64,000 bases of DNA, from contig NIVC01001325.1 of the NCBI GenBank assembly GCA_002269645.1, positions 124,001 through 188,000 on the forward strand, written 5' to 3'. Position 1 is the first letter of the stretch; the number at the start of each line of letters is the position of its first letter. The DNA comes from Macrostomum lignano (lineage: Eukaryota). Under the pieces are notes generated by a model. That model had not been told where the DNA came from. It did no database searches and saw only the letters and a list, made by a program, of their open reading frames with translations. The position numbers were made by a program, and so were the translations under genes. This document shows positions 1,661-56,372 of the stretch, piece by piece.

Positions 1661-2047
1661 ATTGGCCTGGGACGTTCTTCTCATGCTATTTAAATGTACA
1701 CGCGCTGGCCGAGAAAACATACGCAAAATGACTTGATTACATGTACATGTACATTACAAATAAACTATTAGATACAACTTCTAATGAATGAGGTCAGAGA
1801 AAGTCGCGTGTGTAAATTAATTACTTGACTAGCTGGATCAGTCCCAAAATCTGAGAGTTATATAATTGAAAATTAAAACTTCAATCATTCATAATTATGG
1901 TGTACTCAAGTCTAGACAAAATACTTTTCAAAATTAGGGTCAAAACATGCATGGAAAAATCGAAATTTTCAGTTAGGCAAGAAATCAAGTCGGGGGCGGA
2001 GTCCGGTCCGTGTCAGAGGTCAATGGGTGCAGCGGAGCGCCTGCGGC

Positions 2048-2314
2048 CTACTTGCCGTGCAGGTGGCGGTAGATCCTGTAGGCGGCCCTGGCGTAGCGGT
2101 ACACCTTCCTCCACCTGATGCGGCGGAGTCTGATGCGCCACTTCTTCTGCAGCTCGGCGGCCTTCTCGTCCGTCATCTCCGGCTCGTCCATGTCGGCCAA
2201 AGCCTCCAGCGCCGCCATTGCCTCCGCGTCCTCCTCCGACATCTCCTTGCTGCTGGGTCTGGCGACGGCCAGAGCCGCGCACAGCAGGAATCCGAGAACG
2301 AACTGCCACCTCAT
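2048..2314 (-). CDS. Secreted prepropeptide (88 aa): signal peptide, acidic pro-region, KK site, Arg/Trp/Tyr-rich cationic peptide ending G-K; putative antimicrobial peptide precursor
   Basis: Second ATG (2314) of ORF 2048..2467 gives MRWQFVLGFLLCAALAVA (hydrophobic signal), RPSSKEMSEEDAEAMAALEALADMDEPEMTDEKAAELQKK (13 D/E), then WRIRLRRIRWRKVYRYARAAYRIYRHLHGK-stop. GC-rich, intronless. TATA-like CATAAATA on the minus strand near 2410. Confidence 0.8.
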   Translation of the reverse strand: MRWQFVLGFLLCAALAVARPSSKEMSEEDAEAMAALEALADMDEPEMTDEKAAELQKKWRIRLRRIRWRKVYRYARAAYRIYRHLHGK

Positions 2315-2654
2315 GCTTGCTTGGTTGAGTTGTGTTGTCTGATGAAGTTGAGAAGCTAAGAGATATCTCGTTTGCTGTTGGTTGAGTTCTGCTCTCGCAG
2401 GGGTCTCGTATTTATGCAGATAAACTCGGCACGTTTTTCGGCAAGTTGTTTTTTTTTGTTTTCGCAATGGCCTTCACGAGCAACTGCTTTCTTTTGAGTC
2501 TGTAGGTCAAGTGCAATAAAGTTGCTCTCCTACTTCGACTCAGTGTATAATTTTATCATTGCTTGTTCGCTTTTCAAGCATAGAGCGGCATTGACCTTAA
2601 TAGACGGCAACCTTCAATGCTGGAATAGCGTCTGGTGACTGAAGACATCTGAAT

Positions 2655-2830
2655 GAAGAAGAGAGAGGAGAGAGGGGAGAGGGGAGAGGGGAGAGGAGGG
2701 AGAGGGGAGAGGAGGTAGAGAAGAGAGGAGGGAGAGGGGAGAGGGGAGAGGGGGAGAGGGGAGAGGGAAGAGGGGAAAGAAAAGAGAAGATTAGAGAAGA
2801 AAAGATAGAAGAGAGCTGAGAAGAGACACA
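2655..2830. repeat. GA-rich (GGAGA/GAGGG) simple repeat
   Basis: Purine-only tract visible in the sequence. Confidence 0.85.
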
Positions 2831-3969: not shown

Positions 3970-4380
3970 TCACGGATAGCTGAATCCGAAGACCTGAATC
4001 TCGCAGATGCTGAGGCACTGGTCAAAGTCATTGATGACAGTCAGCTGGCTGCCGAATCTGCTGCAGCTGAAATTGCCGATTGCAAACGGAAACGTTTCGT
4101 TCCTTTCAACGCAGGTGACTCCGTCCAACTGGATTGAGAACACGTTTAACCTCTTTGCCTGGTTGTTGTCCAGCCGGTTATAGATGATCAAGTCCGAGAC
4201 AAAGGATGCAGCAGGGAGGCTGGCTGTCCACCATTCCTGTCGACCAGACCCGCAGCCGGTGTGCATGCAGCAGTACCCGTTTTTAAAGTTTTGATCCGTG
4301 TTGCCATCAATCGCATTGGAGCACGATGCATTCTTGTACAGTGTGGACTGCGAGCAGTTTTGCAGCTGCAGTCGCTCCAT
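3970..4380 (-). CDS. F-type lectin (fucolectin/FTP) domain exon
   Basis: ORF contains SNAIDGNTDQNF, CMHT, WWTASL, IIYNRLDNNQAKRL and CLSICEIQVFG, matching the F-type lectin pattern (His of HT plus R-x-D-x..R). Acceptor CTAACTTTAG lies just upstream of ATG 4380. No signal peptide, so an upstream exon is likely missing from the model. Confidence 0.8.
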   Translation of the reverse strand: MERLQLQNCSQSTLYKNASCSNAIDGNTDQNFKNGYCCMHTGCGSGRQEWWTASLPAASFVSDLIIYNRLDNNQAKRLNVFSIQLDGVTCVERNETFPFAIGNFSCSRFGSQLTVINDFDQCLSICEIQVFGFSYP

Positions 4381-5071
4381 CTCTAAAGTTAGCAGGAAAA
4401 CAGAACAACTACTAGAGGCCTGATTCGGGCTGCGATGGATTTGGGAAGGGCGCTTTCACAAATTCCGTAAATTCTACATATGCCAAAAAGACTAGCATCC
4501 ACTTTTATAGGCGTTTCACAAGGCCTAAAACAAACATCTTTGAAAGCAATGCTTTTAAAGTCTTGCTAAGTTGAGGGCTTGTGCAGCCACTAGTTTTGAT
4601 TTTTATGAAATAGGAGTGGAACTCCTCCTTCGGAGGAGAAAGGGGAAGAACTCCCATCACCAGAATTCTATTCCCTGAAGTATCCATCAACTGAAATTCC
4701 ATTTCTTGAACCCTATCTTCCAAATCGTCTCCAAATTCTTTACAAAACCTTTCAAAGACCATAGCTCAAAGACTCTCACGTCTCTCATATCTCCTCTCTC
4801 CCCTCTTCGCTATTATCGTGACTCTCTTCTCTCTCCTCTCTCTCGTCTCATCTCTACCCCTACTCCCTTATTTATTTATTTGCAGTTTTCCCATATAAGT
4901 TTCAACGCTGACTTGCCAGTAGTCTAGGAGAAAAATTGCAACACACATACATACAGACAAACATCGCACCAGTTTTAGTATTAAGAGGCTTATAAAGTAT
5001 TGGTATTATGAAGTTAAAAGCCTATCATTTAGGTTTCTGAGCCCCCCCCCATAGTACGCAGGTAGACTCAC

Positions 5072-5391
5072 TGAGTGGCCGAGTGAAGACGGCGGTGTCC
5101 GGCTCCGAGACCGTCCAGCTGCCGAAGAACGCGTCGAATGCGAACAGCCGGCACAGCTCTCGGACGAAGGCGAAGCCGAAGCAGCCGCTTCGTTCAGTGC
5201 AGCGACTTCCGCATTCGATGGCGGAGCTGCCGCTGGTTGAGTGAAAGTGGGACGGCGCTGCTGAGCCAATAGCGCCGCTGCAGCCCGTGAGCCGTCAGGA
5301 CTTGCAGCAGCAGCAGCAGCAGCATAGCTGCTAGCCAAGCTGATGTCTTCATGAGAGCGCAGGACTGCTAAGACGGAGTGGATGCTGTGCG
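5072..5391 (-). CDS. Probable internal exon, Ala/Ser-rich low-complexity, unknown gene
   Basis: GC-rich island bounded by acceptor GATGCAG|5391 and donor 5072|GTGAGT. Only one frame is open (HSIHSVLAVLRSHEDISLASSYAAAAAAAS...). Partner exons not identified. Confidence 0.4.
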
Positions 5392-5859
5392 CTGCATCGG
5401 CAAACAAATACTTATAGGCAATGCCGCCACCGAAGGGGCGGGTCTCGTTTGCCCAACACTGCCGATTTGCTGGCTCCCGAGCAGTGGGGGCAGTGACAAA
5501 AATGGAAATAAAAAGCCGGTTTGATTTATTTGCTTTATTTTTGCAAGAGTTTCAGATTCAGAATTGGAGCAGGAAAGCTATATTTAGTAACAATTATTAT
5601 TACCAACCATTATTTTAGTAACAATCATCAAGTCCTCCGTTTTAAATTTCAACCATTAAAAATTATTTTATCGCCGTTGTTGATAGTTAGTAAATAAGAA
5701 GAGTAGCAGCGAGATAGAGCTCAGTAGACAGTACGAGAATTTTATGGCCTTGTTTTTTGATACACTTGTAAAAGCTCACAGCATTGAATCACATCAAAAA
5801 TATTCTAACTTTTCAAACCATGCAAAATTTTCTCAACCATCCCTAAAACCATCCGTCAG

Positions 5860-6800
5860 CCACCCCAGAACCACACCTCAAACACCCCTCAACCATTCGA
5901 CCACCCCTCAACCTTCCAAACACCCCTCAACCTCCCAACCACCCCCTCAAACACCCCTCAACCACCCAACCACCCCCTCAAACACCCCTAAACCACTCGC
6001 TCAACCACCCCTCAACCACCCAACCACCCTCTCAAACACACCTCAACCACCCAACCAGCCCTCAAACACCCCTCAACCACCCCTCAACCACCCAACCACA
6101 CTTCAACCCCTCAACCCCTCAACCACCCCCTCAAACACACCTCAACCACCCAACCAGCCCTCAAACACCCCTCAACCACCCCTCAACCACCCAGCCACAC
6201 TTCAACCCCTCAACCCCTCAACCACCCCCTCAAACACACCTCAACCACCCAACCACCCCTCAAACACCCCTCCACCACCCCTCAACCACCCCTCAACCAC
6301 CCAACCACACTTCAACCCCTCAACCACCCAACCACCCCCTCAAACACACCTCAACCACCCAACCACCCTCTCAAACACACCTCAACCACCCAACCAGCCC
6401 TCAAACACCCCTCAACCACCCCTCAACCACCCCTCAACCACCCAGCCACACTTCAACCCCTCAACCCCTCAACCACCCCCTCAAACACACCTCAACCACC
6501 CAACCACCCCTCAAACACCCCTCCACCACCCCTCAACCACCCCTCAACCACCCAACCACACTTCAACCCCTCAACCACCCAACCACCCCCTCAAACACAC
6601 CTCAACCACCCAACCAGCCCTCAAACACACCTAAACCAGCCCTCAAACACCCCCAACCACCCCTCAAACACCCCCAACCACCCCTCAAACACCCCTCAAC
6701 CACCCAACCACCCCTCAACTACCCAACCACCCCTCAAACACCCCCAACCACCCCTCAAACACCCCTCAACCACCCCTCAAACACCTCAACCACCTCTTAA
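5860..6800. repeat. C/A-rich degenerate minisatellite (CCTCAAACACCCCTCAACCACC-like; G-rich on the minus strand)
   Basis: Tandem CCTCAA/ACCACC motifs. Accounts for ORF 5744..6634. Confidence 0.9.
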
Positions 6801-6835
6801 CCCTCCACCCTTCAACCAGAAAGACCAGTCAATGG

Positions 6836-9800
6836 CTAGTGCCGCTTGAAGTGCCTCAGCCGTCGCAGGTTGGTCTTCAGCAGGTTGATATCGCGAGACA
6901 ACGTGGATAAGTCAAGAATCACAACAAGGACGCAGAACACCACCACGATCATGATGACTACGGCGCCAACGCTTCCAGCGTTGCCTGCCTCCTTAGCCGG
7001 GGGCACGTAGTGCTTCTGGTTGCCTTGTAGTTGGAGTGCCTCCGACTTCTCTGTTGATATTACAGGTTGCATTAAGGCATTCACGATCGATGAACATAAT
7101 TGATAGTCTATTATCTTTTAATTCTGTCTGCCCTCTCCTTTTTCTGTTTAATACAGCCAAGCCACATCTCTTCCTGCGAGCCCTCGCGCTTCCCTCTTTC
7201 CAGCTTGGCACTGGCTATTTCTCACTGTTCGATTCTAACTATTTTCTAAGAAACAAAAGTCCTTCCTGTTCGCCTCTAACTATTTTCTAAGAAACGAAAG
7301 TCCTTCCTGTTCGCCTCTGACTATTTTCTAAGAAACAAAAGTCCTTCCTGTTCGCCTCTGACTATTTTCTAAGAAGCAAAAGTCCTTCCTGTTCGACTCT
7401 AACTATTTTCTAAGAAACAAAAGTCCTTCCTGTTCGACTCTAACTATTTTCTAAGAAACAAAAGTCCTTCCTGTTCGACTCTAACTATTTTTAAGAAACA
7501 AAAGTCCTTCCTGTTCGACTCTAACTATTTTCTAAGAAACAAAAGTCCTTCCTGTTTGACTCTAACTATTTTCTAAGAAACAAAAGTCCTTCCTGTTCGA
7601 CTCTAACTATTTTCTAAGAAACAAAAGTCCTTCCTGTTCGCCTCTAACTATTTTCTAAGAAACAAAAGTCCTTCCTGTTCGCCTCTGACTATTTTCTAAG
7701 AAACAAAAGTCCTTCCTGTTCGCCTCTAACTATTTTCTAAGAAACAAAAGTCCTTCCTGTTCGCCTCTGACTATTTTCTAAGAAACAAAAGTCCTTCCTG
7801 TTCGACTCTAACTATTTTCTAAGAAACAAAAGTCCTTCCTGTTCGACTCTAACTATTTTCTAAGAAACAAAAGTCCTTCCTGTTCGACTCTAACTATTTT
7901 CTAAGAAACAAAAGTCCTTCCTGTTCGCCTCTGACTATTTTCTAAGAAGCAAAAGTCCTTCCTGTTCGACTCTAACTATTTTCTAAGAAACAAAAGTCCT
8001 TCCTGTTCGACTCTAACTATTTTCTAAGAAACAAAAGTCCTTCCTGTTCGCCTCTAACTATTTTCTAAGAAACAAAAGTCCTTCCTGTTTGCCTCTGACT
8101 ATTTTCTAAGAAACAAAAGTCCTTCCTGTTTGCCTCTGACTATTTTCTAAGAAACAAAAGTCCTTCCTGTTCGCCTCTGACTATTTTCTAAGAAACAAAA
8201 GTCCCAGTGAATGAGGCGTAAGACGCTGGCTCCTCACTAATGCACTCGGGCAGATCGCTGGTATTCCACTGGCCATCGGCTTTGCAGAACAGAGCCGGCT
8301 CTCCGACGCCAGTCTCGGTGCCATTCTCGCACGTGAAGCTGATCTCAGTGGCGTAGGGGTAAGTCTCAGGTAGGTTGACCTCGATTGCGGGCACAATGGC
8401 CACTGTGCCATTTCCGTACTTCACCGTGGTTTTGGCTTTGTACTGGGCGTTCTTCACGATGGCCGCGGCGTCAGCTGTCCGACGGATGATTCTGTCTGAG
8501 AGGCAGCTGACGGCTGTTGCGGCAAGGAAAGAAGAGGACGTACGTGATTATCCTTGAGTGTCAGACTGCGAAAGACGTTTATTGCGCTTGGGTTTTTATG
8601 ATTCGAAATCTTTCAAGATGCGAAACCTGTGCTCAGAAGTAACAGTTAGCAGGGAGTGAAAGTGCTCAGAGTGCTTGTTGTACTTTGAGGCAGCGTGGCC
8701 AAAACCACTAGCCAATCAGAACGCAAGAACTCTAGGCGGCGGGCAAGCCGCATACACAACAGTGCTCACTCACGCGTGCACTGCAGAGTTTTGAGCCGTT
8801 GCAGATCCGTACCCTGCGCTCCGTACCACTGCGCCTTGATGAGGCTGCCATTGGCTAGGCCGCAACGGAGCAGCTTCTCAAACTGGCGGTCCTCGAAGAA
8901 GTAGCCAATTTGACGACACTTGACGGACACCAGGTTTGGATAGAAGGGGAAACTCGACTGTTGAAATTCGCCGTAGCTCTTCTGGTCGTCGCGATTCTCC
9001 GCCTTGTACGGAGCCGCCTGGCTGCTGATCACAGTGCTGATGTCGTCGCATTTCACGGCTGGATTGGATTGGAGAGTTGCACTCAAATATAGCAAAGGTG
9101 ATCATTTTATTTTATTTCTGACCAGATGTAACCAACGGACCAAATTCGAGATCATTCGAGAAAGCCACTTAAACCCCCAGACACCCAAGGATGGGTTTCA
9201 CAAACGCGAAATTTTTTGCACTTACTTTCATATACGAAGTCTTTTTAGCGGTTGTGAAAGTTTTGAGTAGCGGTTGTGTAAATGGTATTAAGATAACATT
9301 TAGCGGTTGTGAAGTTTCGCGTTTGTGAAGTTTCGCGTTTATGAAAGTAGGTGATTTAGCGGTTGTGAAGTTTTGCGTTTATGAAAGTAGGTGATTTAGC
9401 GGTTGTGAAGTTTTGCGTTTATGAAAGTAGGTGATTTAGCGGTTGTGAAGTTTTGCGTTTATGAAAGTAGGTGATTTAGCGGTTGTGAAGTTTTGCGTTT
9501 ATGAAAGTAGGTGATTTAGCGGTTGTGAAGTTTCGCGTTTATGAAAGTAGGTGATTTAGCGGTTGTGAAATTTCGCGTTTATGAAAGTAGGTGATTTAGC
9601 GGTTGTGAAGTTTCGCGTTTATGAAAGTAGGTGATTTAGCGGTTGTGAAGTTTAGCGTTTATGAAAGTAGGTGATTTAGCGGTTGTGAAATTTCGCGTTT
9701 ATGAAAGTAGGTGATTTAGCGGTTGTGAAGTTTCGCGTTTATGAAAGTAGGTGATTTAGCGGTTGTGAAGTTTCGCGTTTGTGAAAGCAACCCACAACCG

Positions 9801-12800
9801 GGACACCCAAACCCTAAGACTCAAGGAGATCACTAGAATTGGACTCTCGCGCCAAAAGTATCAGGGTTCGATTGCGCGAGCAGCCACGTTAATTTGGTGT
9901 TCTTGCACAGAAATTTGTCGGGGCCACGGATACTAAAATAGCTAGATGGGCCACTCAGGCATAAATACTTGGTAAAACACCTGTCTACTTTCAGTTCAGT
10001 AGCAAAGAAGAATACATAAGCTATTTTATAAAAATAAAGGCAGCTGAAATTTCTTTGATAAGTTTAGAAGCCCAAGCTTGCAGGCGTAAACAACTTGCTA
10101 ATTGGTTCAGCAGTAATGTAGATTGGCCAGTCCACTGGAATGTTATACATGGCAGCTTTGGCTTGGAATTCCGAGAAAAGCAATAAAAATTGAAGGGGCG
10201 AGGAGCATAGTGGGGAAAGGCGCGGTTCGAGGGTTTAGGCGGGGTGGTATTAAGAGCCAATAAATGAGCTTTGGCTTAAAAATACATTCGAATTCTTCTG
10301 TACTACTGAACTGAAAGTAGCTTACACGCAAATATACTGAGTGGCCCATCTAGTTACTCTAGCATCTGTGGCCTTAGGTAAGATTCGCGCCCAAGAGGGC
10401 CAACCTTAAGGCATGACAAGTCGACTCTTACATTACAAAACGATGAGCCTCAGGATCAACTTCTATCCTTGCTGATTTCTACCACCTAAATTCTAAACCC
10501 ATTTAGATTTGCACTTGATTGCAAACGCACCGGTGCAAGTGTTGAGGTCTGGCGGGCTCCATTCTCCCTGCGTTGGATCCCTGAAGCTCTGGTCGCAGGC
10601 GATCTCGCCAGTAATCACACTGCTGTTCTTGTAGGACACGTAGCCTTTCTTGCAGTTGACGCTGAACTGATGCGTGTAGTTGTAGAATTCGTGCACCAGA
10701 GTGTCGGCGTACGGCATCACGTGCGGAATGCGCATGTCCGACTTCAGGATGGTGGCGTTGCAGCGAATCGCTGAAATAATAAAATGACTTTATTTCAAGT
10801 CAAACAAAAACAAAACAAAACATCAAGCGCGGAGGTGACAGCAGCGCGCACTTGAGTCCATTTCCTCCATTCCAAGGACTGGAGGGGGGGGTCGCCACAA
10901 ACACACCCTCAATGACCCCAGCTAATGCTGGTACCCATTTTACAGCCGGATGAATTGAAGTATAATGCAGAGTTGAGTGTGTTGCTCAAGGACACCAACT
11001 GTTCCAGCATGATCGAGAATCGAACCCCCAACCTTTCACTCGTGAGTCCAATGCTCTAATCACAAGGCTACAACCACCTCCCATTATTGTAGAGAGCATA
11101 AAACCAACTATTATGACACAAGCAACCCAGCCTCACGATAGCAGGGCTCAATCGATCCGTAGGCAAAGGTGCCATTAGCCAAGCAGAACGCTTGATGCGG
11201 CAGCAGGCCCTCCGGTGTGGGCGTCGCCGCCGGAGTCTTCGCTAACGGGCTGTCGCTGTTCCTGTAGAAGCCGGGCCGACAGCGGATGTCGGACAGCAGC
11301 CCGTGATGAGGCACATTCTCGAGGTGCAGGCCATAGCTGATGTTCGACATGACCATCGTCAGAGGGTTGAGGCCGCGGATCTGGGACACGGAGCATGTGC
11401 TGGCTGGGGACGTTGGTGTGGGGGGAGCATATTGTGAAACCTAAACATTTTACTACTCTTCAATAGTACGAGTAATTGTCGCAGATTTCAGTTAGAAAGC
11501 GCACCTGGCTTCTCGCAGACCACGGTAAAATTGTTGGTGCAGCTCTCGGCTCGAAGGCCCGAGCTGGGTGCCCAGTAGCCGCTAGCAGACGCGACGCTCA
11601 CATCGATGATCAGCCGGCTGCAGTTCCGACCGGCCGGGCTCGCTGGCAAACCGCCGGGGGACCAGAACTTGCTGTCCACAGAGGCACTGGTAGCCTGCCA
11701 GATCCATTCGCTGTCTGCAGAGGGTGGCAACATCAAGTCTTAAACTGTACTTACTGAAAGAGGGCACTGAAATCCAAAACAATCATCGAACCCATGAGGC
11801 AGAATTAGACCTGAAAGAGTTTTCTCGGACGCATTCAAATGGCATACGAAAACTCACGCAAAGAGCCATTGCACGCAATACAGTTTAGACAAAAAGGTAC
11901 AACGCTCATGCAGCAACCGACCGTTCTTGGGCGACACAACCGCGTCGGCCCAGATGCTCGCCCCGGTGAACAGCACCGCCATGCAGTAGGCCGACAGGTC
12001 GAATACGTTCGCATCTCCGTCCACTCTGGCCAGACTGCCGCCAGCGGTGGCGCATCGTTGCCGCGCGGTCTCTCGGCCGACGGGAGCGTAGACGCTGCCG
12101 AGACGTTGGTAGCACTTGCCAGACACCGGCATGTAGGTCCACTCAGAGCCTGAGCACACTGTGGCACCGTTCACTGGCGGCATTGCATTGGCCGAAGACT
12201 GGAAATCTGCAGGTAAATCAAAGTGGTGAAACTCAAGTTAGGAACTCAAGGACTACTAAATTAGAAGGAAGCAGCGCCCGAAATCTATGGAAAATGTTTT
12301 GAAGGCCACTTTTCGCCGAAAAATACACAACGGAGATAGGAAGTTTTCGTTTTTGAGCACAAAAATTGTTGTTGCTTTGGATAGGAGGCAGACCCAATGC
12401 TCATCTCTTGATATGCTGTGCCTTTCTTATAGCTCTATTGATATTCATAAAGCTTTTTGTTCAGAAAATTAGAATTCTATGTTAATTTCTTATCCTACTT
12501 ACAATTGCACATGTCCTGTGCCTAAAAACCATTAAAATGGCACGGCTCAGCTCATTGGTTTTATGAATCTACGGCTCGTATTTTGTCATTCTTAGCTGAC
12601 TGTGTAACAATATATGTTTACAGCAGAGATGATAAAATAGATTTATAAAACCACATATTCGAGCTGTGCCATGTATTTAATGATTTTTAGGTACAGGAAA
12701 CATAGAATTCTAATTTTCTGAACGAAAAGCTTTATGAATATCAATAGAGCTATTAGAAAAGCACAACATATCAAAGAGATGAACATTGGGTCAGCCTCCT

Positions 12801-15130: not shown

Positions 15131-15384
15131 TTTAATGCTCCAGCGGGTTTGATACCTCTTCCTAGCTGCTGGCTGTAGCACAATTGAGGGAGCAAGTCAT
15201 GGAAATAAATGAATGCATTTCTATAGTGTGGGGAAAGGCTTGAGCGACGACGACTGAGGGATCGATTGACTCTGCGAAATGTATCCTTGGCTGTTATTTT
15301 TCAATTAGGATTTTGTTACGCCGAAGCGATAAGTTAACTATTTTCGAAGCTAAAACGCAAGCAAAATACGTAACGATGCAACAT

Positions 15385-18300
15385 ATCAAACATGAAAGAA
15401 GCGGCATGTCAAACATGAAAGAAGCGTCATGTCAAACATGAAAGAAGCGGCATGTCAAACATAAAAGAAACTTCATGTCAAACATAAAAGAAGCGTCATG
15501 TCAAACATGAAAGAAGCGGCATGTCAAACATGAAAGAAGCGGCATGTCAAACATAAAAGAAACTTCATGTCAAACATAAAAGAAACTTCATGTCAAACAT
15601 AAAAGAAGCGTCATGTCAAACATAAAAGAAGCGGCATGTCAAACATAAAAGAAACTTCATGTCAAACATGAAAGAAGCGGCATGTCAAACATAAAAGAAG
15701 CGTCATGTCAAACATGAAAGAAGCGGCATGTCAAACATAAAAGAAACTTCATGTCAAACATGAAAGAAGCGTCATGTCAAACATAAAAGAAACTTCATGT
15801 CAAACATAAAAGAAGCGCCATGTCAAACATAAAAGAAACTTCATGTCAAACATAAAAGAAGCGTCATGTCAAACATAAAAGAAACTTCATGTCAAACATA
15901 AAAGAAGCGTCATGTCAAACATAAAAGAAACTTCATGTCAAACATGAAAGAAGCCGCATGTCAAACATAAAAGAAACTTCATGTCAAACATAAAAGAAGC
16001 GTCATGTCAAACATGAAAGAAGCGGCATGTCAAACATAAAAGAAACTTCATGTCAAACATGAAAGAAGCGTCATGTCAAACATAAAAGAAACTTCATGTC
16101 AAACATAAAAGAAGCGCCATGTCAAACATAAAAGAAACTTCATGTCAAACATAAAAGAAGCGTCATGTCAAACATAAAAGAAACTTCATGTCAAACATAA
16201 AAGAAGCGTCATGTCAAACATAAAAGAAACTTCATGTCAAACATGAAAGAAGCGGCATGTCAAACATAAAAGAAACTTCATGTCAAACATAAAAGAAGCG
16301 TCATGTCAAACATGAAAGAAGCGGCATGTCAAACATAAAAGAAACTTCATGTCAAACATGAAAGAAGCGTCATGTCAAACATAAAAGAAACTTCATGTCA
16401 AACATAAAAGAAGCGTCATGTCAAACATAAAAGAAACTTCATGTCAAACATAAAAGAAGCGTCATGTCAAACATGAAAGAAGCGGCATGTCAAACATAAA
16501 AGAAACTTCATGTCAAACATGAAAGAAGCGTCATGTCAAACATAAAAGAAACTTCATGTCAAACATAAAAGAAGCGCCATGTCAAACATAAAAGAAACTT
16601 CATGTCAAACATAAAAGAAGCGTCATGTCAAACATAAAAGAAACTTCATGTCAAACATGAAAGAAGCGGCATGTCAAACATGAAAGAAGCGTCATGTCAA
16701 ACATGAAAGAAGCGGCATGTCAAACATAAAAGAAACTTCATGTCAAACATAAAAGAAGCGTCATGTCAAACATGAAAGAAGCGGCATGTCAAACATAAAA
16801 GAAACTTCATGTCAAACATGAAAGAAGCGTCATGTCAAACATAAAAGAAACTTCATGTCAAACATAAAAGAAGCGCCATGTCAAACATAAAAGAAACTTC
16901 ATGTCAAACATAAAAGAAGCGTCATGTCAAACATAAAAGAAACTTCATGTCAAACATAAAAGAAGCGTCATGTCAAACATAAAAGAAACTTCATGTCAAA
17001 CATGAAAGAAGCGTCATGTCAAACATGAAAGAAGCGGCATGTCAAACATAAAAGAAACTTCATGTCAAACATGAAAGAAGCGTCATGTCAAACATAAAAG
17101 AAGCGTCATGTCAAACATAAAAGAAGCGTCATGTCAAACATAAAAGAAACTTCATGTCAAACATAAAAGAAGCGTCATGTCAAACATGAAAGAAGCGGCA
17201 TGTCAAACATAAAAGAAACTTCATGTCAAACATGAAAGAAGCGTCATGTCAAACATAAAAGAAACTTCATGTCAAACATAAAAGAAGCGTCATGTCAAAC
17301 ATAAAAGAAACTTCATGTCAAACATAAAAGAAGCGTCATGTCAAACATGAAAGAAGCGGCATGTCAAACATAAAAGAAACTTCATGTCAAACATGAAAGA
17401 AGCGGCATGTCAAACATAAAAGAAACTTCATGTCAAACATAAAAGAAGCGTCATGTCAAACATAAAAGAAGCGCCATGTCAAACATAAAAGAAACTTCAT
17501 GTCAAACATAAAAGAAGCGTCATGTCAAACATAAAAGAAACTTCATGTCAAACATAAAAGAAGCGTCATGTCAAACATAAAAGAAACTTCATGTCAAACA
17601 TGAAAGAAGCGGCATGTCAAACATAAAAGAAACTTCATGTCAAACATAAAAGAAGCGTCATGTCAAACATGAAAGAAGCGGCATGTCAAACATAAAAGAA
17701 ACTTCATGTCAAACATGAAAGAAGCGTCATGTCAAACATAAAAGAAACTTCATGTCAAACATAAAAGAAGCGTCATGTCAAACATAAAAGAAACTTCATG
17801 TCAAACATAAAAGAAGCGTCATGTCAAACATGAAAGAAGCGGCATGTCAAACATAAAAGAAACTTCATGTCAAACATGAAAGAAGCGTCATGTCAAACAT
17901 AAAAGAAACTTCATGTCAAACATAAAAGAAGCGCCATGTCAAACATAAAAGAAACTTCATGTCAAACATAAAAGAAGCGTCATGTCAAACATAAAAGAAA
18001 CTTCATGTCAAACATAAAAGAAGCGGCATGTCAAACATGAAAGAAGCGTCATGTCAAACATGAAAGAAGCGGCATGTCAAACATAAAAGAAACTTCATGT
18101 CAAACATAAAAGAAGCGTCATGTCAAACATAAAAGAAACTTCATGTCGAACATAAAAGAAGCGTCATGTCAAACATAAAAGAAACTTCATGTCGAACATA
18201 AAAGAAGCGTCATGTCAAACATAAAAGAAACTTCATGTCAAACATAAAAGAAGCGTCATGTCAAACATAAAAGAAACTTCATGTCAAACATAAAAGAAGC

Positions 18301-18430
18301 GTCATGTCAAACATAAAAGAAACTTCATGTCAAACATAAAAGAAGCGTCATGTCAAACATAAAAGAAGCGTCATGTCAAACATAAAAGAAACTTCATGTC
18401 AAACATAAAAGAAGCGTCATGTCAAGCATA
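15385..18430. repeat. 23-bp minisatellite, about 3 kb, with alternating variants
   Basis: Unit CATGTCAAACAT(A/G)AAAGAA followed by GCGT, GCGG, ACTT or GCGC; period 23. Confidence 0.95.
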
Positions 18431-20156
18431 AAAGACTCCTTGGGGGATCGGCTCATGAGGGGGGGGGGCGGCTGCTGAGTTTTCGGGGCTCATGGAGAAA
18501 TACCCGAAATGCTGTGGCTCAAGGCTCATATGGAATTGCTGAGATGTCAAATATTCCGGTGTGAATTGCTGAAACGTCAGAGCTCACGGGGGATGGCTGA
18601 AATACTGTGGCTCTTGATCCAGTTGCTGAGATAGTAAGGCTAACGGGGGAATAGCTGAGATTTCGAGACTCATGAGGGGATTGCTGAAATGCTGCTGCTC
18701 ATCGGGGGGAGGGGGTAGCTGAGATACCAAGGGTCAGTTGGATTCTGTTGGTAGGCCAACCTCGCTCACAGAGGATGCTGACAACTTAGACTATTTAGCT
18801 GGCTTTCAGGGCTGATGCTCTTTGCTTTTAACACCATTTCCTCAGGATATACTAACAATAGAGACTAAATTTAGCTTTCGAACATTGCATGCTTGAATTG
18901 ACAACTTCTATGCTCAAAGTTGCAAGACAGAGAAAGTACATTCTTTTTGAGTCCTAGATTCAAATGAGCACCTTGCAGAGCCTGGTAGAAGTACCTAAAT
19001 GTTGAGCACACTGAGCCAAAGACCTTGGGCTCGATTCCATGCGCGGCCACATTAATTTAGGCCTCGTGTACGAAATTTGACACCTGGAGCTCGGAGAGTG
19101 TACATGAATGGACTATGAGAAATTTAGGACCCGTCTCCGTATCCGTTAGTATCCGTCTGTATGCTCAAAGGTCTGCTAGCAAGCCTGCATCGATCGACTT
19201 GACGAGATTATACCGGCGTTAAATTTCTACGTTGGATCTGAACTAGTCTGTACTGCAGGCTGGAGCGGTGAGAGCTGCTTGAGTGAGATGGACAGATTTA
19301 AGGGCTCTAAAAAGCCTTGCTATATTAAGCTCGTTGAAAGCCTCACTCACTACGAGCTAAACACTGCCTATGGTTGATTGACAAATACGCATACCAAACC
19401 ATGGATCTTTCAGTCGTGAGTCCAACGCTTTAACCACTAGGCTGCAAAAATGCTGTGACGGTGAACCGATTCAGCTCTTTTAAGTGCTGGATGGGTGCAA
19501 ATTTGACCATAAGCTTAAGATTATCAAAGCTTCGTATATCAGAATGCACAAACCCAACCTGAATGTGCAGCTTGCTGGCAATGGGGTGGAGCGTGAGCTA
19601 AGAGTACTGTGAGCAGAGCCGTGCCTATTTCTTTTTTTTCTCTCTCACTTTGTTGTGTACTTGGCACTTTCTAAATTCTACCGGACTGTTTTGACCCGCC
19701 TCTGGACTGTGCAGTGATTTTTGCTTAAATATATTGGTGGTGTGATCTTAGGTTGATTGAATTTGCCCTGACGACGTCTTGTGTTTGACGAAACGCGTTG
19801 GCTAGAATTAAACAAAGTTTACTTTTTATGTTTTTGTAGACGTTTATTTTCCCACTAGGCTGCAACTCTTTAATTATAAATATAACTACAATCAAGCAAC
19901 TAATAATTATTTGCATTGTTTGCGCTTTAAGACAGCACTGTCAGATTAGGCACAAAACTCTGTAGCGTGTATTTTCCTAACACAAAAATGCATTGAACTT
20001 ATCAGACATTTGCAAATAGTTCAGAACCATTGAAAGAAAAAAAGTACAAAAATAAAATTACAAAATACATAATACGACTTTAATAAATAGGGAATAATGC
20101 TTAATGCACTTGAAGTTGACAAGCACAAACTAGCCAAGTCACACAGTCAAGTCCTA

Positions 20157-23024: not shown

Positions 23025-24925
23025 TGCCGTGCGAGCGCGGCAGTTCACTGAATTATGCTGTGTGAGTGCGGCAGTTCACTGAATGATGCTGTGTGAGTGT
23101 GGCAATTCACTGAATGATGCTGTGTGAGCGCGGCAGTTCACTGAATGATGCTGTGTGAGTGCGGCAGTTCACTGAATGATGCTGTGTGAGAGTGCGGCAG
23201 CTCACTGAATGATGCTGTGTGAGAGTGCGGCAGTTCACTTAATGATGCTGTGTGAGAATGCGGCAATTCACTGAATGATGCTGTGTGAGTGCGGCAGTTC
23301 ACTGAATGATGCTGTGTGAGCGTGCAGAAGTTCACTGAATGATGCTGTGTGAGTGCGGCAGTTCACTGAATGATGCTGTGTGAGAGTGCGGCAGTTCACT
23401 GAATGATGCTGTGTGAGCGTGCAGAAGTTCACTGATGATGCTGTGTGAGTGCGGCAGTTCACTGAATGATGCTGTGTGAGGCTGCAGCAATTCACTGAAT
23501 GATGCTGTGTGAGTGCGGCAGTTCACTGAATGATGCTGTGTGAGCGTGCAGAAGTTCACTGAATGATGCTGTGTGAGTGCGGCAGTTCACTGAATGATGC
23601 TGTGTGAGAGTGCGGCAGTTCACTGAATGATGCTGTGTGAGCGTGCAGAAGTTCACTGATGATGCTGTGTGAGTGCGGCAGTTCACTGAATGATGCTGTG
23701 TGAGTGCGGCAGTTCACTGAATGATGCTGTGTGAGGCTGCAGCAATTCACTGAATGATGCTGTGTGAGTGCGGCAGTTCACTGAATGATGCTGTGTGAGT
23801 GCGGCAGTTCACTGAATGATGCTGTGTGAGAGTGCGGCAGCTCACTGAATGATGCTGTGTGAGAGTGCGGCAGTTCACTGAATGATGCTGTGTGAGAGTG
23901 CGGCAGCTCACTGAATGATGCTGTGTGAGAGTGCGGCAGTTCACTGAATGATGCTGTGTGAGAGTGCGGCAGTTCACTGAATGATGCTGTGTGAGAGTGC
24001 GGCAGTTCACTGAATGATGCAGTGTGAGAGTGTGGCAGTTCACTGAATGATGCTGTGTGAGTGCGGCAGTTCACTGAATGATGCAGTGTGAGAGTGTGGC
24101 AGTTCACTGAATGATGCTGTGTGAGTGTGCAGCAGTTCACTGAATGATGCTGTGTGAGAGCGCGGCAGTTCACTGAATGATGCTGTGTGAGTGCGGCAGT
24201 TCACTGAATGATGCTGTGTGAGAGTGCGGCAGTTCACTGAATGATGCTGTGTGAGAGTGCGGCAGCTCACTGAATGATGCTGTGTGAGAGTGCGGCAGCT
24301 CACTGAATGATGCTGTGTGAGAGTGCGGCAGTTCACTGAATGATGCTGTGTGAGGCTGCAGCAATTCACTGAATGATGCTGTGTGAGTGCGGCAGTTCAC
24401 TGAATGATGCTGTGTGAGTGCGGCAGTTCACTGAATGATGCTGTGTGAGAGTGCGGCAGCTCACTGAATGATGCAGTGTGAGAGTGCGGCAGTTCACTGA
24501 ATGATGCTGTGTGAGTGCGGCAGTTCACTGAATGATGCTGTGTGAGTGTGCAGCAGTTCACTGAATGATGCTGTGTGAGAATGCGGCAATTCACTGAATG
24601 ATGCTGTGTGAGTGCGGCAGTTCACTGAATGATGCTGTGTGAGAGTGTGGCAATTCACTGAATGATGCAGTGTGAGAGTGTGGCAGTTCACTGAATGATG
24701 CAGTGTGAGAGTGTGGCAGTTCACTGAATGATGCTGTGTGAGTGCGGCAGTTCACTGAATGATGCTGTGTGAGAGTGCGGCAGCTCACTGAATGATGCTG
24801 TGTGAGAGTGCGGCAGTTCACTGAATGATGCTGTGTGAGAGTGCGGCAGCTCACTGAATGATGCTGTGTGAGAGTGCAGAAGTTCACTGAATGATGCTGT
24901 GTGAGAGTGCGGCAGTTCACTGAAT
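23025..24925. repeat. 31/33-bp minisatellite directly upstream of the DCTD acceptor
   Basis: Unit GCAGTTCACTGAATGATGCTGTGTGA(GA)GTGCG. Confidence 0.95.
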
Positions 24926-25744
24926 GCTACACGAGAAGGGATAAGCGAGGATGATATACAGGGTCTAGTCAAAGGTTTTCCAATCAGTGAAAAAGTCACA
25001 AATAAAAAATGCAAGACAGTGAGTTACAGCAGATCAACAATTAAACAATAGAGGCATTTGCTCCACAGCAAGTTTATTACAAAAAAACAATTGATAAAAG
25101 ACTCATTCTCAGGCAACAATGCCCCAGAAGTGTGATACAGGGAAAGCTTATATCGGTGATGCTCCGGCTGCACTCTCTCGAATAAAGAAGATATTGGAAG
25201 GCTGAAAAATTTTCAGCAAAAGTATCTAGTTTTAACCGGTGCTATTAGCTGAATAGGCAAACACAGGATAGTTGAATATAAGAGAAGAGCGGGGATATAT
25301 GCCAACTAATAAATTGATAATTAATAAATGCTATCGAAGGTCCTTTGAAAGTGGCCACTTTGGCTACAAAATCAAACAATATAGTGTACTGGTTTTATTA
25401 AAGAAAAAATAGCTGGGGTAACCATCTGCATCAACTAGCGCCAATAAGTCGCTTTACTTACTACTGAACAAATAAGTAGAAAGCAAGTTTGAGACACTTT
25501 TTTTGAAGAATCTCATTAGATTTGCATGTACATATATTTGAATGCAATAAACAGGTGATTTAATTAAAGAAAAGCTGACTTTTGGCCAGCTTCAGTTAAG
25601 CTACTTTCAGTTTGTGCGTCGCTAATTGCACTCTAACTAGCCTACTGAGTTAGTAGAAAGTTAAGCAGGCCAACATAACGATTCTTGGACGACTATTTCG
25701 CGATTCTTTTACGATTCAACAACTTACGTGACGCGCTTGTGTTG

Positions 25745-26585: not shown

Positions 26586-29500
26586 TCATCCAAATCGTGG
26601 TCGTTGTCCTCGGAGCTGCTGTTGCTGTCCGCATCGGACGAGCCGAAGCCGTTAATGTCCTCGAGCATCTGCCGTTCGTAGAACTCGTCGCTGTCCATGC
26701 TGAGATTCTCTTCTTCCTCATCGAACTCGTCCTCGTCATCATCGCTAAGCCAGGGCGGCATGTGCTCATAGTCGAACATGAATAGATTGCCTGCCTCGGA
26801 TTCGTCGCTGTCGTGTTCCTCCTCCGCCGACGAGTCACGGTCGTCGTTATCACCGACAGAGGCAGCGGCGGGGCTGGCAGTTTCGACAACTTCAACTCCG
26901 AAGCCTAGGCGAAGCCGAGCAAGACGCTCTGACAGCGCCAGAGATGCATCCGCATCCCCATCGCCTCCCCCAGCCTCGGCTTCTTCGTCCTCCTCCGAGT
27001 CACTGCCTCTGCTGCCGCCACCGCCGCTGCCGCTGATCCGCAGGCGGAGTTTCGGGAACCGGTCGAAGCCGTCCGACAGAGCGGTTCGCCTGGCCAGAGC
27101 GGTAGCCAGCTGGCCGGGCCTGGCCAAACCCGGACACCTGGTCAGGTCTAGGCTGACGAGACGCCGACAGTTGGCCAGCAGGGGCGCCAGGCCGCCGGGG
27201 CCGAGCATCGGGCAGCGGGCTGCCAGCAGCTCCTGCGGTGGTGGTTGAGCGGGCAAACAATGAAGCGTGCGCTCGGAGATCAAGCAGAACTATTATGCAT
27301 TTGAGTAGGGGCTCAAGTATTGCGAAATCACACTAATGGAAATCACACTAATAGAAATCACACTAATGAAAATCACACGAATGGAAATCACACGAATGGA
27401 AATCACACGAATGGAAATCACACTAATGAAAATCACACTAATGAAAATCACACTAATGGAAATCACACGAATGGAAATCACACGAATGGAAATCACAATA
27501 ATGGAAATCACAATAATGGAAATCACAATAATGGAAATCACACTAATGGAAATCACACGAATGGAAATCACACGAATGGAAATCACACAAACGGAAATCA
27601 CACAAATGGAAACCACACTAATGGAAGTCACACTAATGGAAATCACACGAATGGAAATCACACAAACGGAAATCACACGAATGGAAATCACAATAATGGA
27701 AATCACACTAATAGAAATCACACTAATGGAAATCACACTAATGGAAATCACACGAATGGAAATCACACGAAGGGAAATCACACGAATGGAAATCACACTA
27801 ATAGAAATCACACTAATGGAAATCACACTAATGGAAATCACACGAAGGGAAATCACACGAAAGGAAATCACACTAATAGAAATCACACTAATGAAAATCA
27901 CACTAATGGAAATCACACGAATGGAAATCACACGAATGGAAATCACACTAATGAAAATCACACTAATGAAAATCACACTAATGGAAATCACACGAATGGA
28001 AATCACACGAATGGAAATCACAATAATGGAAATCACAATAATGGAAATAACAATAATGGAAATCACAATAATGGAAATCACACTAATGGAAATCACACGA
28101 ATGGAAATCACACGAATGGAAATCACACAAACGGAAATCACACAAATGGAAACCACACTAATGGAAGTCACACTAATGGAAATCACACGAATGGAAATCA
28201 CACAAACGGAAATCACACGAATGGAAATCACAATAATGGAAATCACACTAATAGAAATCACACTAATGGAAATCACACTAATGGAAATCACACGAATGGA
28301 AATCACACGAAGGGAAATCACACGAATGGAAATCACACTAATAGAAATCACACTAATGGAAATCACACTAATGGAAATCACACGAATGGAAATCACACTA
28401 ATGGAAATCACACGAATGGAAATCACACAAATGGAAATCACACGAATGGAAATCACACAAATGGAAATCAGGACACGGGAAATCAGCACACGAACCAAAC
28501 TATTAAAACTGATTCCTAAGCTCATTGCTCACCTGCAGCTCTGGCGGCGGCGGCTGTCGTCCGTCAAAGGCGGTGCCGGACGCGTCTAGGAAGCTCAGGC
28601 GGCAGAGGCCCTTCAGCGAGGCGAAGTCTTCGTTAGCGAGGCCGGCGCAGTCCGGCAGGTCGAGTCGGCGAAGCTGCGGCAGGCGGGTGACGAGGCAGCG
28701 AAGGCAGCCGCCGGTCAGGTCAGCCCTGCCGAGATGGAGCGCCCGGAGGCTGCAGCCGTTCAGCTGCCAGGAGGCTTCGGCGGCTGCGGCGCTGCCTTCT
28801 CGGATCATCGGCCAGCGAGTCCAGTCCTCGAAGAGTGCGACATCCTTCGACTGAGGGGGGAGGCGAACGGGTTTCTTGGGTAGTGGGGTATTGATACTGG
28901 GGTATTGGTATTGGGGCATTGATATTAGGGTATTAGGGTATTGGGGTATTAGCCTTGATACTGGGGTATTGATATTTGGGCACTGGGGTATTGATACTGG
29001 GGTATTGATATTTGGGCACTGGGGTATTGATACTGGGGTATTGATATTGGGGTATTGGGGTATTATTACGTTTTAGCATTTGAGTATTGGGGGCATGGAT
29101 ATTTGGGGTATTGTGTATTGATAGGGAGTGTTACCCGCTCGATGCGCAGCTCCTCCAGCTTCTCCAGCTTCTCCCATCCGACTCGGTCGCCGAGCCGCTC
29201 CAACCGCCTCGCCAGCGTCAGCCGAAGCGACACCAGGCCGGAGCCGCAGGCCTCAGCTGCGGCCGTCACGACAGTCTCGTTCGCCACGTTGGTCAGCGTC
29301 AGCTGGCGAAGTCGGCAGTCGGCGATGAAGCAGAAGGCCTCGGCTTTGCGCAGCTGCTGGGCTGGCAGGCTGAGCTGCTCCAGGTGACGGCCGCAGCCAC
29401 GCATGAGCAGCCAGAGGGCCTGGGGGCGGGTAAAGTGAACTTTTGCACAGCACTAACACGATAACAGGATGTCTGTAGCTAACAGGATGTCTGTAGATAA

Positions 29501-35204: not shown

Positions 35205-35279
35205 GCAATTGTACAGGATTGTGTCATTGTAGCAGCCTTATGCCTCATGCGGATCGACCTTACAGCGATCCAAGATTCT

Positions 35280-38200: not shown

Positions 38201-38345
38201 GGTCTGGAAACTAGTCTCTAAGCGGTCTGGAGACTATTCTCTAAGCGGTCTGGAAACTAGTCTCTAAGCGGTCTGGAGACTATTCTCTAAGCGGTCTGGA
38301 GACTAGTCTCTAAGCGGTCTGGAGACTATTCTCTAAGCGGGCTGG
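35280..38345. repeat. 22/23-bp minisatellite with a unit-sequence gradient, upstream of paralogue 1
   Basis: Unit shifts from TAGGGACCATTCTGTAACGATC to TGGA(G/A)ACTA(T/G)TCTCTAAGCGGTC along the array. Confidence 0.95.
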
Positions 38346-38984
38346 GGACCAAATTAATTATTCGTGACGCTATCAATACTTCAATCTGGCAGGCAATAAA
38401 AAACAGGAATTTGGTAGACAAACACATTGTGTCCGCTATTTGTGCTTGGCACAGTTCTCAACACAACAGCTTGTAATTAATAAAAGTAATTACTTACAAC
38501 ATTGACGATAAATTTTTTGGCTACTATGAGAAAAAAATAATTGAATTAAATACTGGAGCAGTATTGATAACAATTTAACCATAAGTATCTGAGACTACAC
38601 TATTTTACCAGGGTTAAACTTGAGCAATGTTGTCGACATTAACTATTTAATAACATACCCCAGTTAATTGGATACTGCAACGCAATAATAATAATAAGTG
38701 ATAAGTTGGTCCTCTTGATCGATTTCACGCGCTTAAAGCGCTACTAACAGTAGAAATCTAAGTGGTAACTGCTAAAATAGCTGAATAAAGCAAAAATAAG
38801 ATAGTTAGAAAGACAGTTTTACTGATCTAATTTTCAGAATAATGTTAATAATTGGAAGGCCTTTTAAAAAGGAAATCGGACAAGACAAAATCGCGGCATA
38901 GCGATAAAATTTGACATATACAACTGAAAGTGGGGTGAATTTGCATTGTGTCTATATATATGTGGATGTATCTATGTAGAGAAA

Positions 38985-39134
38985 TACAAAGATAAGTAGA
39001 TGAAGATAGAGAAAGATAAATAGAGACGGACAGAAAGATAGATAGACACAGATAAATGATAGGTAGACAGATGGATAGATAGTTATATAGATAGATAGTT
39101 ATATAGATAGATAGACAGATGGATAGATAGATAT

Positions 39135-39181
<47 letters not shown>

Positions 39182-39214
39182 TATAGATAGATAGATACAT
39201 ACATAGATACATAG

Positions 39215-39274
<60 letters not shown>

Positions 39275-39285
39275 GTAGACAGATG

Positions 39286-39332
<47 letters not shown>

Positions 39333-39342
39333 GGATAGATAG

Positions 39343-39373
<31 letters not shown>

Positions 39374-39397
39374 GATGGATAGATAGATAGATAGATG

Positions 39398-39486
<89 letters not shown>

Positions 39487-39517
39487 GTAGACAGATGGAT
39501 AGATAGATAGATAGATG

Positions 39518-39567
<50 letters not shown>

Positions 39568-39689
39568 AAGATAGATAGATAGATGGATAGATAGATAGAT
39601 AGATGGATATATAGATAGATAGATAGATGGATAGATAGATAGATAGATAGATAGATGGATGGATAGATAGATAGATAAATAGATAGATG

Positions 39690-39774
<85 letters not shown>

Positions 39775-39785
39775 ATAGATAGATG

Positions 39786-39868
<83 letters not shown>

Positions 39869-39970
39869 GGATAGATAGATAGATAGATGGATATATATAT
39901 ATATATAGATAGATGGATAGATAGATAGATAGATAGATGGATGGATAGATAGATAAATAGATAGATGGAT

Positions 39971-40009
<39 letters not shown>

Positions 40010-40389: not shown

Positions 40390-56372
<15,983 letters not shown>

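Follow-up and report, generated by a model that had tools for sequence, protein, structure and literature searches.

Predicted secreted prepropeptides of Macrostomum lignano with charge-matched acidic propieces and hypervariable cationic tails: a candidate host-defence peptide family

A stretch of 64,000 nucleotides (nt) of the flatworm Macrostomum lignano (GenBank assembly GCA_002269645.1, contig NIVC01001325.1, positions 124,001 to 188,000 of the forward strand), called here the window, carries near its beginning a small gene for a cationic peptide precursor, and the analysis of this gene and of its relatives is reported here. The gene lies on the minus strand, a point absent from the first-pass annotation of the window, and was found as an open reading frame (ORF) of 88 codons running from 2314 to 2048, with the exact extent 2048..2314. 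The coding sequence (CDS) is complete, with an ATG at 2314-2312 and a TAG stop at 2050-2048, and its frame is conserved in the paralogues. The translated product, MRWQFVLGFLLCAALAVA / RPSSKEMSEEDAEAMAALEALADMDEPEMTDEKAAELQKK / WRIRLRRIRWRKVYRYARAAYRIYRHLH / GK*, is a prepropeptide of 88 aa. Residues 1-18 (MRWQFVLGFLLCAALAVA; 2261..2314) form a predicted signal peptide, recognized by inspection from a clear n-h-c layout with an A-x-A motif (A-V-A at -3..-1) and conserved in the family. Residues 19-58 (RPSSKEMSEEDAEAMAALEALADMDEPEMTDEKAAELQKK; 2141..2260) constitute an acidic propiece with 13 D/E and a net charge of -8, which ends in KK57-58 (2141-2146), a conserved, predicted processing site. 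Residues 59-86 (WRIRLRRIRWRKVYRYARAAYRIYRHLH; 2057..2140) correspond to the predicted mature cationic peptide (net +11) and are followed by Gly87-Lys88 (2051..2056), a predicted C-terminal amidation signal that is invariant in the close subfamily. The first-pass annotation had described this same succession of signal peptide, acidic spacer, KK and G-K-stop, and a recount returned its figures unchanged: 13 acidic residues in the spacer, and a tail of 28 aa that contains 10 Arg and 1 Lys but neither acidic residues nor Cys.

The GC content of the ORF is 0.65, and 0.92 at third codon positions (GC3); that of the flanks is 0.36-0.47, and the exons of the neighbouring gene have a GC3 of 0.69-0.79. 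The ORF is a genuine, independent single-exon gene and more than a chance reading frame, since its GC3 is 0.92, the frame is open in the paralogues, the insertions and deletions between intact copies are all in frame and the prepro region bears the signature of purifying selection. A Pfam search with the 88-aa protein returned only a meaningless sub-threshold match to UPF0149, and a sequence search of the PDB returned nothing below E=0.27.

The DNA around the CDS carries a promoter of its own. A TATA-like box, CATAAATAC (2409..2417, minus), is located about 100 nt upstream of the ATG, and the family promoter motif GAAAAACGTGC (2429..2439, minus) lies further upstream. The 5' untranslated region (UTR), whose start is deduced from the TATA position only, would measure about 65-70 nt (2315..2384, minus) and is strongly conserved among paralogues; on the other side of the CDS, a proximal 3'UTR of about 55 nt (1990..2047, minus) is conserved and marks the end of the paralogue similarity. 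In the family, the promoter consists of GGAAA[AC]ACG[TA]G and, 12-22 nt further on, [CT]ATAAAT. This box is found upstream of all close copies and at the distant loci L005, L006 and L007, where the motif also accompanies it (395-428 in L005); in L009 the TATA box is degenerate and the ACGTG element is kept. The combined exact pattern was encountered only at family promoters in the ~187 kb examined, and this signature is retained even where the member proteins are only ~40-50% identical. The ACGTG core hints at a bHLH (basic helix-loop-helix) or bHLH-PAS factor as a candidate regulator. A purine-rich microsatellite of the GGGAGAGG type (~150 bp, window 2650-2800) adjoins the conserved promoter region on its upstream side.

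Sister copies of the gene are transcribed. The Mlig_3_7 GenBank (BOX15) annotation rests on a transcriptome assembled from RNA-seq with the genome as guide (PMC5730564), so the standalone models of 78-89 aa proposed for the paralogues (P0002, P0003 and others) are transcript-supported. In Table S11 of PMC7336406, the transcript RNA815_1838.3 (501 nt) is equated with the sister gene Mlig001477.g4. The in situ hybridization (ISH) primers of this transcript map exactly to positions 9977-10000 and 10320-10340 of locus L003, and the forward primer falls in the stretch homologous to the 5'UTR of the window gene. Since the 364 bp separating the primers equal the probe length, the sister mRNA must be colinear with the genome over 5'UTR, CDS and 3'UTR, and is therefore intron-less.

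At least 25 "hypothetical proteins" of M. lignano, among them a tandem cluster with pseudogenes, were found to be related to the window gene. All relatives are unnamed, and the first-pass annotation was right in recognising no named family. An exhaustive HMMER scan of 1.84 billion representatives gave ten clusters, and a broader profile search, clustered at 90% identity, raised the number to 23; apart from one Logan contig, all of them come from M. lignano. The genome search for paralogues that had been proposed as a check yielded five further intact paralogous copies in M. lignano, together with two degraded copies and two 5' fragments; within the 64-kb window itself, tblastn found no other. 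The tandem cluster lies on NIVC01001664.1 (L003) and comprises three intact copies, two degraded copies and two promoter/5' fragments; one of the degraded copies has lost its ATG and acquired a stop and a frameshift, and the other carries a 1-nt deletion. The dispersed members adjoin unrelated genes (Bestrophin, CRAL_TRIO, PARP, proteasome), and DNA similarity between the window gene and its paralogues is limited to ~450-600 bp covering promoter, 5'UTR, CDS and ~55 nt of 3'UTR. One annotated product of the cluster, BOX15_Mlig001477g4 (P0001, 139 aa; L003 10001-37330), is a chimera in which the 31 initial codons of one tandem copy are followed by the 5'UTR, read as protein, and the entire CDS of another copy 27 kb away. 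Such a product points to read-through, to cis-splicing from one tandem copy to the other, or to an artefact of transcript assembly.

The different parts of the precursor have diverged to very different extents. Nei-Gojobori ratios of nonsynonymous to synonymous divergence (pN/pS, 15 pairs) were 0.30 in the signal region, 0.28 in the propiece and, at 0.64, higher in the tail, where some pairs exceeded 1; they point to purifying selection on the prepro region and to relaxed constraint on the tail. Synonymous divergence in the signal region is itself strikingly low (pS 0.07). In an alignment of 15 members, the signal is almost invariant, M-[KR]-W-Q-x-x-L-G-L-L-L-C-x-x-L, with M1, L7, G8, L10, L11, C12 and L15 identical throughout, and is the best conserved part of the family. 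The propiece contains an EAL core in which L36, E37 and L39 are invariant or nearly so, and the Lys at the cut site (K58) is nearly invariant and usually stands within KK or KKK. Beyond the cut site, the tail is completely variable. Its lengths range from 6 to 34 aa, the 34-mers reaching a charge of +16, and several types can be distinguished: the long Arg/Trp/Tyr tails of the window subfamily, a Pro/Arg repeat (FLRVRLPRVRMPRVRLPRVRLPRLRVRFRWSKK), a form with two Cys and many 6-10-mers in which hydrophobic and basic residues alternate (FVRVRVRL, IFRVRVRI, WLRVRARVRI, FIHIHF). Of the six intact close members, four, among them the window copy, keep YRIYRH[LM] near the C-terminus. A divergent member encoded at 541-813 of a 929-bp Logan contig (SRR31628392; L005) has Pro/Arg repeats of the RLPRVR type without a terminal Gly, and its tail is reminiscent of the Pro/Arg-rich antimicrobial peptides (AMPs).

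Taken as a whole, these comparisons describe a family that is apparently undescribed, restricted to Macrostomum, fast-diversifying and of the birth-and-death type. A literature search for Macrostomum AMPs, the gene identifiers, the peptide strings and RNA815_1838 found no description of it, and the supplements of further papers contained none of its identifiers, the single Mlig024774 match being g6, an unrelated gene.

The net charges of propiece and mature peptide, calculated with aligned cut sites, are tightly coupled across the family (Spearman rho -0.91, n=22, p=4e-9), and the correlation persists when ten subfamily means are used (rho -0.84, p=0.002). This tracking is the pattern expected if the propiece serves to neutralise the peptide and represents the strongest new argument for the masking role that had been attributed to the acidic spacer of the window gene. 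The proposal of a dibasic cleavage followed by Gly-Lys amidation also gains from the comparison, K58 being nearly invariant and 18 of the 22 distinct tails ending in Gly, Gly-Lys or Gly-Lys-Arg. The architecture of a secreted prepropeptide thus appears well supported by comparative evidence.

From this architecture, a maturation pathway can be proposed. The 18-aa signal peptide would direct the precursor to the secretory pathway and be cut off after A-V-A18, and the 40-aa propiece (net -8) would neutralise the cationic tail (+11) in transit or storage. A proprotein convertase of the subtilisin type would then cleave after KK57-58 and a carboxypeptidase would remove the basic residues; Lys88 would be trimmed and Gly87 converted to a C-terminal amide. 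Flatworms are known to process prohormones at basic sites and to amidate them (PMC2953531). The product should be a 28-residue, Arg/Trp/Tyr-rich and largely helical peptide, WRIRLRRIRWRKVYRYARAAYRIYRHLH-NH2, or, if RLRR is also cut, a 21-mer, or a 16-mer after RWRK. The computed masses of the amidated forms are 3882.262 (28-mer), 2845.611 (21-mer after RLRR) and 2106.150 (16-mer after RWRK). The freed peptide may finally act on anionic membranes as a host-defence (antimicrobial) peptide, as does Hydra arminin. In this scheme the cleavage positions and the amidation are putative, and the antimicrobial activity and the site of action are so above all.

AlphaFold2, supplied with the family alignment, predicted no globular fold (predicted TM-score 0.31), a signal helix at residues 3-17 and a single helix over residues 49-86 (per-residue confidence, pLDDT, 73-86). 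The structural remark of the first-pass annotation, an alternation of Arg with hydrophobic residues in the N-terminal half of the tail and a helical C-terminal half, is borne out in part, for the two segments taken separately: a moment of the beta type peaks at tail residues 6-17 and the moment of the alpha type amounts to 0.45-0.57 in residues 9-28, which cover the C-terminal half. It does not extend to the peptide as a whole, whose helical moment (muH) of 0.28 is not above that of shuffled sequences (p=0.24).

An antimicrobial, membrane-active host-defence peptide is the most likely reading of the gene, although we rate it no higher than an even call. A conserved prepro region, a hypervariable mature peptide and a multigene family of the birth-and-death type occur together here, as would be expected of host-defence precursors. 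The interpretation given in the first-pass annotation is therefore partly supported, the antimicrobial and membrane-active function being the part that we infer. Several observations weigh against this function. The modest moment of the complete 28-mer has just been given, and the exact 28-mer is itself uncertain because the tail contains an internal furin-type site, RLRR (R-x-[KR]-R, residues 62-65), and an RK pair (residues 69-70), at which a convertase might release the 21-mer or the 16-mer instead. The exact window protein was absent from the public gene calls when looked up in public assemblies, no canonical AATAAA or ATTAAA was found within 650 nt downstream of the ORF, and the evidence of transcription comes from sister copies and not from the copy in the window. 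A "gonads" ISH pattern of one sister copy is said to originate from Ramm et al. 2019, reportedly a study of socially sensitive gene expression. It is entered for the copy at L003:10001, with this attribution, in Table S11 of PMC7336406. In positional RNA-seq, the same copy gave 93 reads in the head-only sample, 94 in +testis, 49 in +ovary and 176 in the whole worm (class 0,0,0). Its expression is low, non-differential and not confined to gonad regions, which does not resemble the picture of an abundant gut or epidermal (epithelial) AMP or of an arminin, whose transcripts rank with the most abundant ones of Hydra endoderm. Both the ISH and the RNA-seq probably mix copies, because the paralogues are 80-90% identical. 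An antimicrobial function thus sits awkwardly with these sparse expression data.

The gonadal staining leads to the alternative that best withstands the data, namely that the gene encodes a reproductive secreted peptide, acting as a paracrine or gamete-associated signal, as a player in sexual selection or as an AMP protecting gametes or eggs, this last version overlapping with the host-defence reading. The ISH record of RNA815_1838.3 (Mlig001477.g4) derives, according to PMC7336406, from a study of socially sensitive expression, and hypervariable tails and birth-and-death dynamics would fit reproductive proteins, which that article argues to be fast-evolving in the genus. A processed and amidated gonadal peptide is also plausible because, in planarians, pc2 is expressed in the testes together with prohormones, and these organs have been called "likely a site of prohormone processing" (PMC2953531). 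However, the head-only fragment, which is devoid of gonads, gives an equal signal, the addition of testis or ovary regions produces no enrichment and the staining may reflect cross-hybridisation among the closely similar paralogues. In addition, a signalling ligand needs neither a charge-matched propiece nor a cationic amphipathic tail. A gonadal role is accordingly considered possible but rather unlikely.

A precursor of a neuropeptide or peptide hormone, in which the amidated peptide would be the ligand of a receptor and not a membrane-active effector, would display the same signal peptide, dibasic site and Gly amidation signal. The short members would then resemble RFamides or RLamides (IFRVHVRF-NH2, FVRVRVRL-NH2), reads of the sister copy are present in the head fragment and some Hydra neuropeptides are reported to double as AMPs (PMC5614986). 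The role is disfavoured because no motif of the mature peptide is conserved. The family has no common C-terminal pharmacophore, the residue before Gly (or the last one) being H, L, C, P, I, F, K or D, and tail length varies among paralogues from 6 to 34 aa. Neuropeptide paralogues normally keep the mature peptide and vary the spacer, whereas here pN/pS of the tail exceeds that of the propiece. Peptides with 10-16 basic residues and charge-matched propieces would also be atypical, and the family is not listed in the flatworm neuropeptide literature searched. This explanation appears distinctly improbable.

Still less credit is given to a secreted offensive or defensive toxin, or to a surface-active product of rhabdites, mucus or adhesive release, without antimicrobial function: many venom and skin-secretion peptides share the architecture, conotoxins and frog-skin peptides likewise pair a conserved prepro region with a mature peptide that is hypervariable, and short tails alternating R with hydrophobic residues could self-assemble, but the sister copy shows no gland- or tail-specific expression (class 0,0,0) and its transcript is not among the adhesive, antrum, prostate and cement-gland entries in the part of Table S11 of PMC7336406 that was accessible.

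The last alternative concerns the gene model and not the function. Upstream of the peptide gene, on the same strand, a multi-exon gene encoding a Sushi-repeat protein occupies window positions 3970-11336; it was delineated by eight tblastn high-scoring segment pairs, has Pfam matches to Sushi and, weakly, to a galactose-binding-like (F5/8-type-C-like) domain, and possesses its own TGA stop at 3972-3970. UniProt entry A0A1I8JEL3 (P0004, 634 aa) makes the ORF the last coding exon of this gene, joining ...FGFSYP to PSSKEMS..., that is, eight upstream exons to the ORF from residue 20, and skipping the signal peptide. The model does map to window exons on one strand (11336->3973, then 2257->2051), which are near-identical to it, and its cationic tail is identical. 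This fusion is nevertheless scarcely credible, since its donor is weak (CC|GTGATC) and overlaps the in-frame TGA of the Sushi ORF, its acceptor is cryptic (GTCGCCAG|A, inside codon 19), the ATG and the signal peptide, best conserved and under apparent purifying selection, would become intronic, the peptide gene has its own conserved TATA-like box and promoter motif, no Sushi or fucolectin-like sequence is present within 5-10 kb of paralogue loci L001-L004 while L006-L009 have other annotated neighbours, and the transcript-based paralogue models P0002 and P0003 begin at the ATG. By its junction sequence, the conservation of the signal, the separate promoter and the contexts of the paralogues, A0A1I8JEL3 was rejected as a prediction artefact.

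The remainder of the window is extremely rich in minisatellites. Seven very large arrays (15382-18435, 23029-24926, 27324-28470, 35275-38349, 41387-42757, 47918-49043 and 50244-55373) alone account for about a quarter of it, with, for example, a 46-bp unit repeated 66 times, a 33-bp unit repeated 59 times and the 23-bp unit ATGCCTGTTCCAGAGTGGAAGGG repeated 225 times, the latter recurring at 33578-34161, 47918-49043 and 50244-55373. An 11/110-bp minisatellite, (CTCAACCACCC)n, extends over 5744-6802, where the Sushi gene has no mapped exon but is flanked by exons on both sides; a Pro/Thr-rich plus-strand ORF of 296 aa (5744-6634) coincides with it and most likely reflects the repeat rather than a gene. 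A segmental duplication relates 29715-33487 to 44402-50021, in which the blocks 29715-30436 and 32720-33487 are 98.3-98.6% identical to 44402-45123 and 49254-50021, respectively, with repeat arrays of unequal length between the blocks. Long tetranucleotide microsatellites, (AGAT)~245 and (AGAC)~190, are located at 39032-40009 and 45617-46371. An Rfam tRNA match on the minus strand at 47352-47421 (34.7 bits, just above the gathering score), not called by ARAGORN, could represent a pseudogene of a tRNA or a repeat derived from one.

If the host-defence reading is correct, the family would open a way to study how flatworms defend themselves innately and control their microbiome; in the literature searched, no gene-encoded AMP family of such a type turned up for free-living flatworms. 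As M. lignano is a transgenic model amenable to RNA interference, the family of at least 25 members is directly testable; its members share a compact promoter and a conserved prepro cassette, and their tails, from 6-mers (FIHIHF-NH2) to 34-mers, form a natural library. It also shows cleanly how the charges of propiece and peptide co-evolve and illustrates what appears to be a striking convergence with Hydra arminin, and its analysis has exposed an error in UniProt, the fusion model A0A1I8JEL3. Should the gonad staining prove real, the family would in addition bear on reproductive-tract or gamete immunity in hermaphrodites.

Among known systems, the closest likeness is to arminin 1a of Hydra (ARM1A_HYDVU), to which the first-pass annotation makes no reference. 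Both precursors measure 88 aa and are made of a signal, an acidic propiece and a cationic C-terminal peptide (18 + 39 + 31 aa in arminin 1a, 18 + 40 + 30 aa here), with a GKK end in arminin and GK here, and both tails read K-x-W-R-x-R...R-[IV]-R-W-R-K-V. Arminin 1a-C, KPWRFRRAIRRVRWRKVAPYIPFVVKTVGKK-NH2, is amidated, helical and membrane-disrupting (PMC6217004), and a helix is predicted for the tail of the window gene by AlphaFold2. The arminins are reported to be a tandemly clustered multigene family restricted to the genus Hydra and highly expressed in the endodermal epithelium (PMC10945409); tandem clustering and taxonomic restriction are also found here, although the restriction is to Hydra in one case and, except for the one Logan contig, to M. 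lignano in the other. Further differences are the lack of a KK site in arminin 1a (NDA|KPW) and the low expression, with "gonads" ISH, of the sister copy, as against high endodermal epithelial expression.

The Smith-Waterman score of the tail against arminin 1a was 61 against 28 +/- 5 for shuffles, none of 5000 reaching 61, for a comparison chosen post hoc and a motif that is short (~17 residues) and of low complexity. Pairwise BLASTP of the two precursors gave only E=0.6. Profile-profile alignment with hhalign gave 89% probability (P=2e-6, score 34.8) over 71 columns. Because both families share an extreme segmental composition, the columns of the arminin alignment were shuffled within segments as a control. 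Shuffling of all three segments gave a null score of 15.2 +/- 3.5 and shuffling of the tail only a null of 21.8 +/- 2.5, 34.8 being reached in 0 of 300 cases each time; when only signal and propiece were shuffled, the null was 29.0 +/- 3.6 and 7% reached 34.8. From these shuffles it follows that only the short WRxR...R[IV]RWRKV tail motif is order-specific and that the prepro region is not, and after this control the hhalign P=2e-6 was dropped as evidence of homology and membership in the arminins was rejected. Convergence on an Arg/Trp membrane-binding motif appears a better explanation of the resemblance than descent, and is the simpler one because the similarity sits in the hypervariable tail and not in the conserved prepro region; retention of the motif in such a tail since the cnidarian-bilaterian split seems implausible. 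True homology with the Hydra arminins, or, as a second reading, a gonad-expressed and socially regulated family of amidated cationic peptides, is jointly given a slim chance. In the first case, both families would be remnants of an ancient metazoan prepro-AMP gene, recognisable only in a constrained WRxR...RxRWRKV core, and the arminins would be no Hydra-specific orphan family; in the second, mating and sexual conflict would be linked with antimicrobial protection of gametes in a hermaphrodite.

The amphibian AMP superfamilies of the preprodermaseptin type combine a conserved signal and acidic propiece with a hypervariable cationic amidated peptide. The flatworm family shares with them a prepro region conserved in protein and nucleotide sequence, a dibasic site, a hypervariable peptide, Gly amidation and numerous paralogues, but the sequences are unrelated, the site is KK here and KR there, and granular-gland expression is not known in the flatworm. 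In mammalian alpha-defensins, an anionic propeptide neutralises the cationic mature peptide, and the charge of the propiece balances that of the mature peptide across paralogues as it does here (rho -0.91), although the present family has neither a Cys framework nor homology with them. The putative "arminin-like" AMPs of Trichoplax (PMC12013895) were likewise called on architecture alone, with a signal, acidic and basic regions at the N- and C-terminal sides, respectively, and a Gly at the end. The peptides described here would therefore be of a kind already known, that of cationic, amidated host-defence-type precursors with a charge-matched anionic propiece, of which they represent a new flatworm family but not a categorically new one.

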